A DNA stretch of 64,000 nt from Orbicella franksi (GCA_964199315.1 OZ116699.1:19902001-19966000); one strand, 5' to 3'. Numbered from the stretch's first letter, positions 48,483-52,700 are shown. Notes: generated from the sequence alone by a model not told the origin. Numbers and translations are program-made.

Positions 48483-51400
48483 ATGTTTTCCAGCGTTGTT
48501 TGGAGTTTGCTGTTTCTGTCGAGCACGTCATGGGTCGTTATGTCTCAAGGTGAAGGCCAAGAAATGAACACATGCCCAACAGAATGCCAGTGCACCACGA
48601 TGAACAAAGTGTACATGTACTGTGGCTTCGCAGGAGGACTCAAACATTTGATGATATTTCCGTCCTTCATTCCCATTAAAGCGGAAATTCTGTCACTTCG
48701 AATGAATTTGCTTACGGAGATACCGGAGAGTGCCTTGAGGAATTTAACGTGTTTGACGACCTTGAATCTTAGATCCAACAAATTGCGTGATTTGCCAGCG
48801 ACAGTGTTTCGTGACCTGACGAGCCTCAAATCTTTCAACGCGGGTTTCAACAAGCTGTCATCGCTACCAGGGCGCCTATTTCAGGGGTTAAATGCCCTCC
48901 AGGAGCTTTATCTTGATAATAACGCAATTGAGCGAATCCCAGAGGAATTGTTTCAAGATCTGCCGTCCTTGAAGCGATTACATCTCCACCACAACAAACT
49001 CAAGACATTTTCCGGAAATGCTTTTCGAGGAACGTTTTCATTGCAAGGTCTATCACTGGCAAACAACCAATTGACAGCTATTCACGAAGGAACATTTGCT
49101 AATTTGACCTCGCTCAGAAGACTAACACTCACAGACAACAGGATCATGACCTTATCGGAGAACTCGCTTAGAGAACTTGGTGCTCTAACGATCCTCCGAC
49201 TAGAAAGCAATAATATATCATCAATTCCAGAACGGGCTTTCGCTGGATTAAAAACAGGAATAGTCGCTCATCTTAGACGTAATCCCTTTTACTGTGACTG
49301 CAAATTGCGGTGGTTAAAAGGCTGGCTTAAGTCCAAGACAAAATATATTCATTCCATCGCTTCTCGTACAACATGTTTCCAACCAGATCATCTGAAAGGG
49401 AAACCCATTCTTTACGTAGCCGATGAGCAGTTTACCTGCGTGGACGGTCAGTGGACCGAGTGGAGCCCATGGAATGCTTGCAGCAGGACCTGTGGACGCG
49501 GCACGCAAGTCTCGACAAGGCGCTGTACAAATCCCCCACCAGGGAGAGGTGGGGAGAAATGCGAGGGAAACCACATCAAGACAAAGAGCTGCAATGGCCC
49601 ACACTGTGGAGCGAGCTGGACGGCTTGGTCAGAATGGAGTGAATGCAGCAAGACTTGCTCTTCAGGAATTGAAGTGAGGACTCGGTCTTGCCAACATTCT
49701 CTCACTGGGTTGAGCAGTGATAGTTGTATAGGGTCTCCCCAAGAAAGACGTATTTGTACCAGAGAACCATGCAGTATTGATGGCGTATGGAGTTCATGGT
49801 CCAAATGGTCATCTTGCAGTGTAACATGTTCTTGGGGGACAAGATTAAGGACAAGAATTTGTGACAATCCACCACCTAGATATGGTGGAAAACCTTGCTT
49901 TGGAAGAGGCATTACAACAGAAATATGTTATTTAGGTTCCTGTCCAGTTCATGGTGGTTGGTCTACCTGGTCTTCCTGGTCAAGCTGTAGTGCATCATGT
50001 TCAGCTGGTACAACAACAAGATATAGAAACTGTAGTAAACCTGTTCCTCGGTATGGTGGGGATTTGTGTGATGGAGATTCAATCCAGCGGGAACATTGCC
50101 AGTCAGGGTCATGTCCTATCCATGGAGGATGGGCATCTTGGTCAATTTGGTCCATGTGCTCTGTGACATGTTCTAGAGGATCTCAACTAAGGCTCCGAAT
50201 TTGCAATAACCCATTACCTCAACATGGAGGTCAAAACTGTCCAGGAAATTTTTCTGATCTTAGACACTGTGACCTTGGTCCATGCCCTATTCATGGAAAC
50301 TGGACAGCCTGGTCTCAATGGAGTGACTGTAGCAAGACATGTGCAAATGGGACAAGATCTCGCAACAGAACTTGCAGCAACCCTGTTCCACAGTTTGGTG
50401 GCAGAAATTACCCAGGAGAAGTGACTGAAATTAAATCATGCATCAAAGCACCTTGTCCCATTCCGGGCAAATGGGCCACCTGGTCACAATGGTCAAAATG
50501 TAGCAAAAGTTGCTCTAGTGGTAGAAAGTCTCGAAGACGAACTTGCGATAATCCTTCCCCAAGCAATGGGGGTCCACCCTGCACTGGAAGGGCCACTGAA
50601 ACTGAGATGTGCCAGTTAATACCGTGCCCTATCGATGGGGGGTGGGGAGAGTGGTCTAACTGGACAGATTGCAGCAAGACTTGTTCTGAAGGAATACAAT
50701 CTCGATACCGGAATTGTAACAATCCACCTTCACAACATGGAGGAAAACAATGCTCTGGAAATTCTAACCAGAGTAAACATTGTAGCCAGCAACCTTGTTT
50801 TATACATGGAGAATGGACAAAGTGGTCAAACTGGACAGACTGCAGTAAAACATGTGATGTTGGACAGCAGAAAAGGACAAGATTGTGCCTCAATTCAAAT
50901 CTTAAATCTGTTGCACAGGCAAGTGACATTCTTTCCTGTGCTGGAAATGAGACTGACATGCGGGTCTGCTTCCAAGGACCTTGTTCTAATCAAGGCAAAT
51001 GGACTGAATGGTCAAGCTGGTCTCAATGTTCTGTCAGCTGTGGACTTGGAAAGCAGGAAAGGTTCAAGAACTGCAGTAGAAATGGAGACTTAAGTACAGA
51101 ATTTTGCCTGGGTCCACTGATGCAGGTAAAAAGTTGTTATCAAAACTGTACAGTGAGTGGTGGATGGAGTGAATGGTCTAATTGGACTGCATGTTCTTCA
51201 TCATGTGGTAATGGAGTCCAGGCAAAATTTAGGCTTTGTACCAACCCCAAACCTCAAGCTGGTGGTGACAGCTGCTCTGGCAAAAATGTCATGTTTAAAA
51301 GTTGTGTTATTGCCAAGTGCAGAGATGAAAGCCATCAAAATTATTCCTTCTGGACTCCATGGACAAGCTGGTCTCATTGTTCTGCAACTTGTGCTAGAGG

Positions 51401-52700
51401 ATACCAGACCCGTTCACGGTACTGCAGAAGACGACTGAGCCCATTTCATCTCGGAAACTGTACAGGCATTAAGGGACCAATTCAAGTGGAGAGTAACATC
51501 TGTGAGGTGCAGCCTTGTGCAGAATGGAGTAGTTGGTCAACATGGCAAACTTGCAGCCAGACATGTGGTAGTGGCATACAGAGGAGAGTAAGAAAATGCA
51601 AAGGCTCGATAATTGATATGGATTGTCAAGGAGAAAATTCACAAGCTGTCAGTTGCAACACAGAACCTTGTCCTACAATCCACCCAATAACTTATCCCCC
51701 TCGAATTACTCTAAGACCACCAGATCCATGTCCTGATCCTGAAAAACCACAAAATGGCTATTACAAGAAAATTGAACAGTACGGTTCTTACTATGTTACC
51801 CATTATTGCAGAAGACATTATTATGTTCATGGACCAAGACTGCGGCACTGTGAAAGTGATGGCACATGGTCTGATGAAGTGCCTTACTGCCTCCCTATAT
51901 GCGGAGAGTCTAGTTCAAGTTTTGACAATGTACAATATCAGCGGTTAAGAATATTTGGTGGTGGTACATCTCTTCCTGGTCTGTGGCCATGGCAAGTGGC
52001 ATTGACAGTTAATGACCTTTTTCACTGTGGTGGGTCCCTTATTGCAGAAAGTTGGGTGGTGACAGCTGCTCATTGTGTTTACAACAGACACACAAGGAAG
52101 CTTTTCTCTCATATTAGAGTCAATCTTGGAGTTCATGACGTTAAATCTGGACTAAGAGAACCTTATGTTCAAAGTATTGACAGTATTGAGATAGTGCCTC
52201 ACCCAAACTTTGACTGGAACACTTTTGACTCAGACTTAGCATTGATAAAACTTAAATGGAAGGCCAACATAACTGACCATGTACGCCCAGTGTGTTTGCC
52301 AAGCAAACAGCAGAGACGTAAAGTAACTACTGGTGCTATGGGAGTTATGTTAGGGTGGGGACTCACTGAGGGAGAAAAGCCAAAAACAGAATTACAACAA
52401 GTTTATATGCCAGTTGTGGGACACTCAAACTGCCAAAAAGCTTACAAGAAAGAGACTTGGCCTGTAACATCAAACATGCTCTGTGCAGGATATGCTAGTA
52501 ATATTAAGGACTCCTGTAAGCGGGATAGTGGGGGAGGGTTTCTATTCCATGATTCAAAGGGCAAAAGGAAGAAGTGGTTTCTTGGAGGGATTATTAGTTG
52601 GGGAAATCCTCAATGTGGGACACCTGGAAAATACAGTGTGTTTACTCATATAAATAGTAGATTTTCAAGGTGGATAAAAAATCATGTACATTACAGCTGA
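48483..52700 (+). CDS. Secreted mosaic serine protease, single exon, 1405 aa: signal peptide, LRRNT, 8 LRR, LRRCT, 13 TSP1, Pro-rich linker, CCP/Sushi, trypsin-like domain
   Basis: Uninterrupted 4.2-kb ORF. The first ATG (48483) is followed by a hydrophobic signal. LRRNT CPTECQC, LxxLxLxxN repeats, LRRCT NPFYCDCKLRWL, 13 WxxWxxWxxCSxxC units, CCP CPDP...YC...C...GTWS...PYC, linker LPICG, activation site RLR-IFGG, triad TAAHC / DSDLALIKL / DSGG. No TM segment. Confidence 0.95.
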   Translation: MFSSVVWSLLFLSSTSWVVMSQGEGQEMNTCPTECQCTTMNKVYMYCGFAGGLKHLMIFPSFIPIKAEILSLRMNLLTEIPESALRNLTCLTTLNLRSNKLRDLPATVFRDLTSLKSFNAGFNKLSSLPGRLFQGLNALQELYLDNNAIERIPEELFQDLPSLKRLHLHHNKLKTFSGNAFRGTFSLQGLSLANNQLTAIHEGTFANLTSLRRLTLTDNRIMTLSENSLRELGALTILRLESNNISSIPERAFAGLKTGIVAHLRRNPFYCDCKLRWLKGWLKSKTKYIHSIASRTTCFQPDHLKGKPILYVADEQFTCVDGQWTEWSPWNACSRTCGRGTQVSTRRCTNPPPGRGGEKCEGNHIKTKSCNGPHCGASWTAWSEWSECSKTCSSGIEVRTRSCQHSLTGLSSDSCIGSPQERRICTREPCSIDGVWSSWSKWSSCSVTCSWGTRLRTRICDNPPPRYGGKPCFGRGITTEICYLGSCPVHGGWSTWSSWSSCSASCSAGTTTRYRNCSKPVPRYGGDLCDGDSIQREHCQSGSCPIHGGWASWSIWSMCSVTCSRGSQLRLRICNNPLPQHGGQNCPGNFSDLRHCDLGPCPIHGNWTAWSQWSDCSKTCANGTRSRNRTCSNPVPQFGGRNYPGEVTEIKSCIKAPCPIPGKWATWSQWSKCSKSCSSGRKSRRRTCDNPSPSNGGPPCTGRATETEMCQLIPCPIDGGWGEWSNWTDCSKTCSEGIQSRYRNCNNPPSQHGGKQCSGNSNQSKHCSQQPCFIHGEWTKWSNWTDCSKTCDVGQQKRTRLCLNSNLKSVAQASDILSCAGNETDMRVCFQGPCSNQGKWTEWSSWSQCSVSCGLGKQERFKNCSRNGDLSTEFCLGPLMQVKSCYQNCTVSGGWSEWSNWTACSSSCGNGVQAKFRLCTNPKPQAGGDSCSGKNVMFKSCVIAKCRDESHQNYSFWTPWTSWSHCSATCARGYQTRSRYCRRRLSPFHLGNCTGIKGPIQVESNICEVQPCAEWSSWSTWQTCSQTCGSGIQRRVRKCKGSIIDMDCQGENSQAVSCNTEPCPTIHPITYPPRITLRPPDPCPDPEKPQNGYYKKIEQYGSYYVTHYCRRHYYVHGPRLRHCESDGTWSDEVPYCLPICGESSSSFDNVQYQRLRIFGGGTSLPGLWPWQVALTVNDLFHCGGSLIAESWVVTAAHCVYNRHTRKLFSHIRVNLGVHDVKSGLREPYVQSIDSIEIVPHPNFDWNTFDSDLALIKLKWKANITDHVRPVCLPSKQQRRKVTTGAMGVMLGWGLTEGEKPKTELQQVYMPVVGHSNCQKAYKKETWPVTSNMLCAGYASNIKDSCKRDSGGGFLFHDSKGKRKKWFLGGIISWGNPQCGTPGKYSVFTHINSRFSRWIKNHVHYS

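Follow-up and report, generated by a model that had tools for sequence, protein, structure and literature searches.

Cnidarians have C3, factor B and MASP, and what triggers their complement-like system is poorly known. In MASP, C1r and C1s a CUB-EGF-CUB arm usually precedes two CCP modules and a serine protease (SP) domain, and Limulus factor C is laid out as EGF, three CCP modules, LCCL, a C-type lectin, two CCP modules and SP. Here we describe a gene on the plus strand of a 64,000-nucleotide stretch of the coral Orbicella franksi (GCA_964199315.1, OZ116699.1:19902001-19966000; the window, from whose first letter all positions without a contig name are counted). Its coding sequence (48483..52700) specifies a large secreted protein with a leucine-rich repeat (LRR) domain, 13 thrombospondin type 1 repeats (TSP1 repeats, or TSRs), a single CCP module and a trypsin-like protease. 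The gene is a variant of the modular CCP-SP protease kind, in a separate, anthozoan-wide lineage.

The product shares with MASP, C1r and C1s a CCP module directly before the protease, a linker Cys, an Arg|Ile activation site, the catalytic triad and Asp189. The Cys136-Cys201 pair is absent in both the coral protein and MASP, and anthozoan MASPs also have in common with it the DSGGG-F sequence and the K-W-x-L-G-G-x-x-S-W-G loop. It differs from MASP in carrying Arg193 and Ser226 and in forming a separate clade in trees, and from the whole MASP/C1r/C1s group in having one CCP module instead of two and in its arm, in which Pfam finds no CUB or EGF domain and which consists of the LRR domain and the 13 TSRs. 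Since there is no CUB-EGF-CUB arm, the protein has no evident means of docking on collectins or ficolins.

MASPs have been divided into TCN and AGY lineages (PMC6015906, PMC8605247), and the coral gene resembles the latter in its AGY-type Ser195 codon and in having the protease within a single exon. Both the Ser195 codon (52527..52529, plus strand) and the Ser214 codon (52596..52598, plus strand) read AGT in the window, and three divergent family loci (L011, L012 and L013) use the same AGY codons. Because AGY Ser195 codons are also found in unrelated serine proteases, the codon and the single-exon protease are weak evidence of affinity. The AGY-type lineage (MASP-2, MASP-3, C1r and C1s) lacks the histidine-loop disulfide Cys42-Cys58, and the MASP-2 alignment and a MASP-3-type row were consistent with this loss. 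In contrast to these vertebrate enzymes, the coral protein keeps both cysteines (HCGG...TAAHC), so that the pattern of markers is mixed.

With factor C the protein shares a recognition arm built onto a CCP-SP zymogen, and factor C-architecture proteins are among the nearest relatives of its tail outside the family. The arm of factor C is made of EGF, CCP, LCCL and lectin modules, as opposed to LRR and TSR here, and the two fall in separate clades; Pfam found neither LCCL nor Lectin_C in the coral product, which does not have the Limulus layout. Many tandem TSP1 repeats are also a feature of SCO-spondin, whose vWD, TIL, LDLa and EMI domains were not found here by Pfam and which has no LRR, CCP or trypsin domain. 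Judged by this domain content, the name 'SCO-spondin-like' given to relatives in databases is an automatic by-product of TSR similarity. LRR_8 and trypsin domains are also combined in arthropod proteins of about 637 amino acids (an ESM Atlas cluster), found at a score of 0.89, which is below the reliability threshold and makes the match a lead only. TSP1 is not among the families shown for that cluster (at most three per cluster), and the resemblance is probably convergent.

The architecture itself has been catalogued already, but the family is uncharacterised. Neubauer et al. 2017 (PMC5446238) counted TSR proteins with a trypsin domain among the novel architectures of cnidarians; the type that they studied was ShK-TSR-trypsin (Ap_Trypsin-like), for which they suggested a function in nematocysts and food capture, and they considered the ShK-containing proteins likely toxins. 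Supplementary file 1 of that paper lists the same LRR-type architecture without comment; LRR is never mentioned in its main text, and no phylogeny, gene structure or function is given for this type. The listed LRR-type entries, matched by architecture and not by sequence, are almost certainly orthologues of the coral gene. The first-pass annotation of the window, which recognised no described protein with the full architecture, is corrected by this list and by the RefSeq orthologues, which are named 'SCO-spondin-like' and are uncharacterised. The orthologue identifiers XP_032220546, EDO47710, XP_048584555, LOC114516215, XP_028391429, LOC124443619, AIPGENE24270 and KXJ22952 and the A. digitifera model identifiers were named in no paper that we found, and neither the red-coral skeletome and Nematostella nematosome papers nor keyword searches yielded a description of an LRR-TSR-CCP-trypsin protein.

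Affinity of the catalytic tail

To place the CCP-SP tail, we compared its sequence and predicted fold with those of known proteases. Against solved structures, the best sequence match was MASP-2 (2.8e-53), followed by MASP-1, enteropeptidase and C1s. An AlphaFold (AF2) model of the tail, built from a 26-row family alignment, reached a pLDDT of 88.4 and a pTM of 0.87, and its top Foldseek matches were the CCP-SP fragments of MASP-2, MASP-1, MASP-3, C1s and C1r (TM 0.77-0.84 over ~340 columns). We also searched 1.84 billion representatives exhaustively with HMMER; the single-stretch matches above ~42% identity were family members only, and the nearest tails outside the family, at 36-40% identity, belonged to proteins of MASP architecture and of factor C architecture (five Sushi modules, LCCL, C-type lectin and trypsin). 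When the SP domain alone was scored, cnidarian MASPs and factor C-type proteases lay 20-40 bits above other proteases.

Phylogenetic trees gave a similar picture. In the protease-domain tree (73 rows) the family forms a clade with support of 99/93 that adjoins two cnidarian MASP clades, a join that is weak (83/54) and counts as unsupported. In the CCP+SP tree (48 rows) the family is recovered at 100/98, apart from all MASP and factor C rows. Both trees are unrooted and were built without human MASP-2, C1r, C1s and Limulus factor C. The protease domain does not group with the chymotrypsin/elastase-like genes of the coral or with its other trypsin-domain genes. From these comparisons, we place the tail among the CCP-SP proteases, as an old lineage of its own and not as a MASP.

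The coral has in addition a MASP of its own, on another contig (G000:C3:18892182-18898347, loci L015 and L016). This gene has at least seven exons, three of them for the protease domain, encodes Gly193, uses TCT for Ser195, and its exons are 66% identical to the Montipora MASP. The first-pass annotation had proposed that the tail is like that of MASP, C1r, C1s and factor C and that the protein is nevertheless distinct from MASP. The first point agrees with the sequence matches, the predicted fold and the tree neighbourhood, and the second with the separate multi-exon MASP gene and with the family clade. Protease phylogenies, which the annotation had suggested, gave a firm clade for the family, and its neighbourhood with cnidarian MASPs only at the 83/54 mentioned above.

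Gene structure and transcript

A stop-free open frame extends over 48378-52700 on the plus strand (open reading frame listing of the window), and its first ATG, at 48483, opens a coding sequence (48483..52700) of 1405 codons followed by TGA. Orthologues of 1401-1405 amino acids share the start Met. A poly(A) RNA contig of 4652 nt from run X1 is colinear with 48397-53048, with 0 differences, and covers the gene from the LRR domain through the protease. In the same poly(A) RNA run, a junction unitig with a depth of 40 connects 47796-47825 with 48399-48426, delimiting a 573-nt GT..AG intron in the 5′ untranslated region (UTR) at 47826..48398 on the plus strand. The 3′ part of the non-coding first exon lies at 47300..47825 (plus strand), where an X1 RNA contig stops exactly at 47825, at the donor AAG|GTAAGT; the start of this exon is upstream of 47300. 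The second exon (48399..53048 at least, plus strand) contains 84 nt of 5′UTR, the entire coding sequence and at least 348 nt of 3′UTR. In the spliced form there is no in-frame ATG upstream of 48483, and a stop is present there. An unspliced path is also found in runs X1 and X8, and 14 RNA runs from nine studies, whose records carry a single species label or 'coral metagenome', contain most of the stretch.

Because of the spliced junction 47825->48399, the gene has a 5′UTR intron and is intronless only in its coding sequence. The first-pass annotation had called the gene intronless, which is right for its one coding exon and wrong for the gene as a whole, and had placed the LRR/TSP1 part and the protease in one mRNA, which the 4652-nt contig supports. 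A gene-model artefact or a fusion of two genes can be rejected, since the RNA contig spans the coding sequence and orthologues have equal length. A single exon might also be taken as the mark of a retrogene, but this sign is weakened here: other TSR arrays and many trypsin domains of the genome likewise lie in long single open frames, so that exon structure alone is not strong evidence for retroposition. In a genome search the gene was single-copy, with no paralogues, and the next-best genomic matches were plain trypsin domains at 37-38% identity. This is a genuine gene that the coral expresses, and its product is a large secreted protease.

Domain organisation of the product

The protein begins with a signal peptide of about 23 residues (aa 1-23, 48483..48551, plus strand), which contains the Kyte-Doolittle maximum (aa 1-20) and whose end is approximate. 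This is the sole hydrophobic segment, and the same Kyte-Doolittle scan found no transmembrane-like stretch beyond the N-terminus, so the product should be secreted. The LRR domain (48573..49442, plus strand) is made of an LRRNT Cys cluster from C31, eight 24-residue LRRs counted by eye (aa 67-258) and an LRRCT (aa ~259-320). Pfam recognises LRR_8 (E 5.5e-66 over 7 stretches; E 5.1e-51 for the domain) and, weakly, LRRCT (E 0.0033).

Thirteen TSP1 repeats follow (aa 321-1064, 49443..51674, plus strand; Pfam TSP_1 in 13 stretches, E 3.8e-139), with 13 W-x-x-W-x-x-W motifs between aa 324 and 1015. Six cysteines are present in 12 of the 13 repeats; the sixth Cys of repeat 9 was read from the sequence, just beyond the 56-residue span used for counting. 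In TSR6 the fourth Cys is replaced by Tyr643 (TAT, 50409..50411, plus strand), which leaves five cysteines and therefore an odd one. Cys occupies this position in every close relative that yielded the motif (8/8). At position 50410 the RNA contig of run X8 has G, giving TGT (Cys), and run X1 agrees with the window; Tyr643 is therefore allele-specific, a polymorphism or a slightly damaged allele.

The single CCP/Sushi module (aa 1083-1136, 51729..51890, plus strand) matches the full Pfam Sushi profile, 1-56, with E 6.4e-07 on the excised piece. Its four Cys and its Trp are conserved in the family alignment, and the module before it is TSR13, not a second CCP. The activation linker (51891..51950, plus strand) contains the ICG motif with Cys1140 and the scissile Arg1156 in the sequence ICG...RLR|IFGG; Cys1140 is predicted to pair with Cys1271 (position 122) in an interchain disulfide. 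The chymotrypsin-fold serine protease occupies aa 1157-1405 (51951..52697, plus strand; Pfam Trypsin at aa 1157-1398, E 3.3e-54 to 1.5e-55). Its key residues are Ile1157 directly after the cut, His1197, Asp1251 and Ser1349, Asp1343 (position 189), Arg1347 (193), Tyr1384 (225) and Ser1385 (226). All the domains and key residues listed by the first-pass annotation were thus recovered by open reading frame, Pfam, motif and residue checks, and its secreted zymogen is in line with the lone N-terminal hydrophobic stretch and the Arg|Ile site.

Two positions around the active site are unusual. Arg1347 aligns with Gly193 of MASP, and most family members have Arg, Gln, Lys or Asn at this position, with Gly in two; position 226 is Ser across the family and Gly in the aligned MASPs. 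Human mesotrypsin (PRSS3) also combines Arg193 with an otherwise intact trypsin-like site, and it is an active enzyme. By analogy, Arg193 may make the coral protease resistant to canonical inhibitors and restrict its S2′ site. The analogy is limited, as mesotrypsin is a small digestive enzyme and position 193 varies in the coral family, and the inhibitor resistance of the coral protein is in this sense inferred.

Conservation across Anthozoa

Full-length relatives with the same Pfam set were found at 92-54% identity in coral-type assemblies. The same set is found in a Montipora foliosa protein (59% identity) that carries the name 'SCO-spondin-like', in a Nematostella vectensis protein named 'SCO-spondin isoform X2' (46%) and in 'uncharacterized' proteins of the octocorals Dendronephthya and Xenia (about 33-36%). 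Every named member among the best 120 matches is anthozoan. The coral product has all the features of this anthozoan LRR-TSR-CCP-trypsin family (AipTRYP2/A.digTRYP type), whose hallmarks are a signal peptide, an LRRNT-LRR-LRRCT domain, 6-20 TSRs, one CCP, a C-terminal SP and orthology over the full length. All four parts align across the family. Conservation is highest in the CCP-protease tail, at 83% among stony corals and 57% between these and Nematostella; the corresponding values of the LRR domain are 68-70% and 42%. Four further species, including one of the octocoral-type clade, likewise have the whole coding sequence in a single open reading frame. Within the family, the CCP+SP tree separates a hexacoral-type clade, with Montipora and Nematostella, from an octocoral-type clade, with Dendronephthya and Xenia.

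The number of TSRs varies from 6 to 20. In the Nematostella orthologue (P0018 / P0121) about six near-identical tandem TSRs lie at aa ~520-860, and its isoforms have 19 and 20 motifs; from their similarity, these repeats look like a recent expansion of the stalk within the exon.

Possible function

The features described above lead us to favour, with slightly better than even confidence, a secreted regulatory zymogen that is targeted by a ligand and is of the same kind as MASP and factor C, and that would start or relay an extracellular cascade; for a ligand-targeted cascade protease in general, we put the chance at about half. In this lineage the capped eight-LRR domain and the rod of 13 thrombospondin repeats take the place of the usual CUB-EGF-CUB arm. 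In the proposed mechanism, the LRR/TSR arm would bind a conserved extracellular ligand, such as matrix, a cell surface or a microbial or algal surface, and thereby concentrate the zymogen. The chain would then be cut after Arg1156, in the RLR|IFGG motif seen in the protein, presumably by a neighbouring molecule of the same kind or by another Arg-specific protease. The conserved positions of Cys1140 and Cys1271 suggest that a disulfide between them would hold the catalytic chain to the arm. The enzyme would cleave after Arg or Lys, as Asp189 suggests. Its substrate range would be narrow, and it would probably withstand canonical inhibitors, owing to the Arg that takes the place of Gly at position 193, as in mesotrypsin; a cascade would in this way be started or relayed.

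An immune or complement-initiating role is plausible, and as the setting we favour immune or symbiont surveillance, which might feed into C3. One version of this idea goes considerably further, and we consider it speculative and quite unlikely. Anthozoans would then have, in addition to lectin-MASP complexes and factor C, a third and self-contained type of humoral pattern-recognition protease. Such a protease would sense microbial or symbiont surfaces with the LRR/TSR arm that it carries itself, and clustering there would autoactivate an inhibitor-resistant, MASP-related domain acting on C3/factor B or on a different effector. A complement-like cascade could in this way be entered without lectins, by a route that predates the split of hexacorals and octocorals.

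Several observations weigh against these proposals. No functional, localisation or challenge-expression data were found in the literature for any family member, and the flanking genes in the window, which are unrelated to the protease gene, give no functional hint. Expression was very low in the one informative raw-read run, X23, with 33 reads, mostly on the repeat at 53005-53054, and run X21 gave 0, numbers too few for expression level, strand or transcript ends. At this repeat, which lies in the 3′UTR, RNA reads pile up, their ends loose to either side, and additional contigs appear, which looks like a dispersed repeat and not like expression of the gene. As contigs from RNA libraries can include DNA, the splice junction is the only strict proof of RNA. 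Arg193 and Ser226 could reduce the activity of the enzyme. Octocoral-type members have K-(S/T/I)-I-(R/T) instead of the canonical R|IxGG, several lack Asp189 and two lack Cys191-Cys220, and all of them keep His, Asp and Ser. The canonical motif is missing in P0087, P0091, P0100, P0113, related octocoral-type members and locus L011. To judge from these sequences, activation and specificity probably differ between the octocoral-type and the hexacoral proteins, and with the loss of the canonical site the proposed mechanism may not hold family-wide.

The LRR domain adds to these reservations. Its best solved relatives by sequence match to the structure database are LGR5, LRIG1, LRRTM, IGFALS, LRRC15, TLR3 and the Nogo receptor, and it is of a generic extracellular type that is not specifically immune. 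Nor is the concave face of the LRR domain hypervariable, the entropy of its exposed positions being 1.55 in hexacorals, against 1.71 on the convex face (p 0.16). We considered an arms-race receptor with LRR hypervariability, and the entropy comparison gave no sign of one. A single-copy gene with a non-variable LRR face is unlike such a receptor, yet it is compatible with an invariant ligand; the lack of concave-face diversification and the single copy argue for a conserved ligand over a diversifying receptor. As this ligand, an invariant microbial pattern and an endogenous partner would both be compatible with these observations.

An endogenous partner would suit a protease that works in the matrix or in development and takes no part in defence. 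The TSR rod would then anchor the protein in the mesoglea or at the cell surface, as in ADAMTS and further TSR proteins, and the LRR domain would bind its partner as in proteins of the Slit, LRIG, LRRTM and IGFALS types. In growth, patterning or neural wiring, the protease would process proteins of the matrix or of signalling pathways. All of the solved LRR relatives named above except TLR3 bind endogenous ligands, and this function would also fit the single copy with one-to-one orthologues across Anthozoa, the concave face without excess variability and a window without an immune gene neighbourhood. TSR arrays are, moreover, common matrix modules in cnidarians (PMC5446238). However, the tail is nearest to the cascade initiators MASP, C1r, C1s and factor C and not to matrix-remodelling serine proteases, and self-activation or activation within a cascade would suit a zymogen that has Asp189 and an Arg at its activation site. 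We regard a developmental function as a real possibility, though on balance an unlikely one. It is not sharply divided from the cascade protease that we favour, because mammalian MASP-1 and MASP-3 also have developmental roles, with a link to 3MC syndrome (PMC3701661), and the two proposals overlap to that extent.

The unusual protease positions and the octocoral sequences lead to a different alternative, in which the protease is catalytically crippled or strongly restricted and serves chiefly as a scaffold or adaptor, with its domain retained for binding, like those of haptoglobin or HGF-type pseudo-proteases. Such a protein might well show a non-Gly residue at position 193 in most members, Ser226 in place of the Gly of the aligned MASPs, and the changes at the activation site, at Asp189 and at Cys191-Cys220 listed above for octocoral-type members. 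The catalytic machinery is nevertheless well preserved. His57, Asp102 and Ser195 are invariant in 26 of 26 aligned sequences, and the TAAHC and DSGG contexts, the neighbours of the oxyanion hole and the hexacoral activation motif are conserved through the whole depth of Anthozoa, the hexacoral members all having RLR|I(F/V/Y)GG, the triad, Asp189 and the Cys pattern. Together with the activity of human mesotrypsin despite its Arg193, this makes a scaffold improbable.

A venom, nematocyst or digestive protease, comparable to the ShK-TSR-trypsin proteins of Neubauer et al., is suggested by the listing of TSR and trypsin proteins together in PMC5446238, where the ShK-containing ones were deemed likely toxins. 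Pfam finds no ShK domain in the coral protein, though, which has an 1100-residue recognition arm and, in addition, the kind of CCP module that is typical of regulatory cascade proteases. The protease also stands apart in the tree from the coral chymotrypsin/elastase-like and other trypsin-domain genes, and we consider such a function highly improbable.

A MASP-related catalytic unit fused to its own LRR/TSR arm, and single-copy throughout Anthozoa, is a concrete, clonable candidate for a lectin-independent initiator, or failing that for a regulatory protease that a ligand targets to the boundary between host and microbe or between host and symbiont. Should the function be developmental, the family would still illustrate the redeployment of the CCP-SP cassette by domain shuffling in early animals. 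The analysis also corrects the misleading database name 'SCO-spondin-like', and the family offers a natural series at position 193 (Arg, Gln, Lys, Asn and Gly) for studying inhibitor resistance.

Neighbouring genes and related loci

Elsewhere in the window, two convergent open reading frames at 13443-14846 (plus strand) and 16826-18832 (minus strand) carry Ion_trans/PKD_channel domains and form a pair of TRP-like channels. Exons of a CHY zinc-finger/RING protein (27135-27671, minus strand), a FIST-domain protein (29405-31721, minus strand) and a protein with DUF5918 and a U-box (31739-33073, plus strand) lie further along.

Trypsin domains in single open frames form tandem clusters in the genome. 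One of these, at G000:C2:19360721-19402464 (L002, L004 and L009), lies about 0.5 Mb upstream of the window, and a second is found at G000:C7:8931616-8937592 (L005, L007 and L008), where L007 and L008 are nearly identical. In addition, an 832-residue open frame of TSP1 repeats at G000:C15:6582851-6585157 is 44-48% identical to the TSRs of the protease gene, which indicates that the protease gene is not alone in having a long TSR array within one exon.

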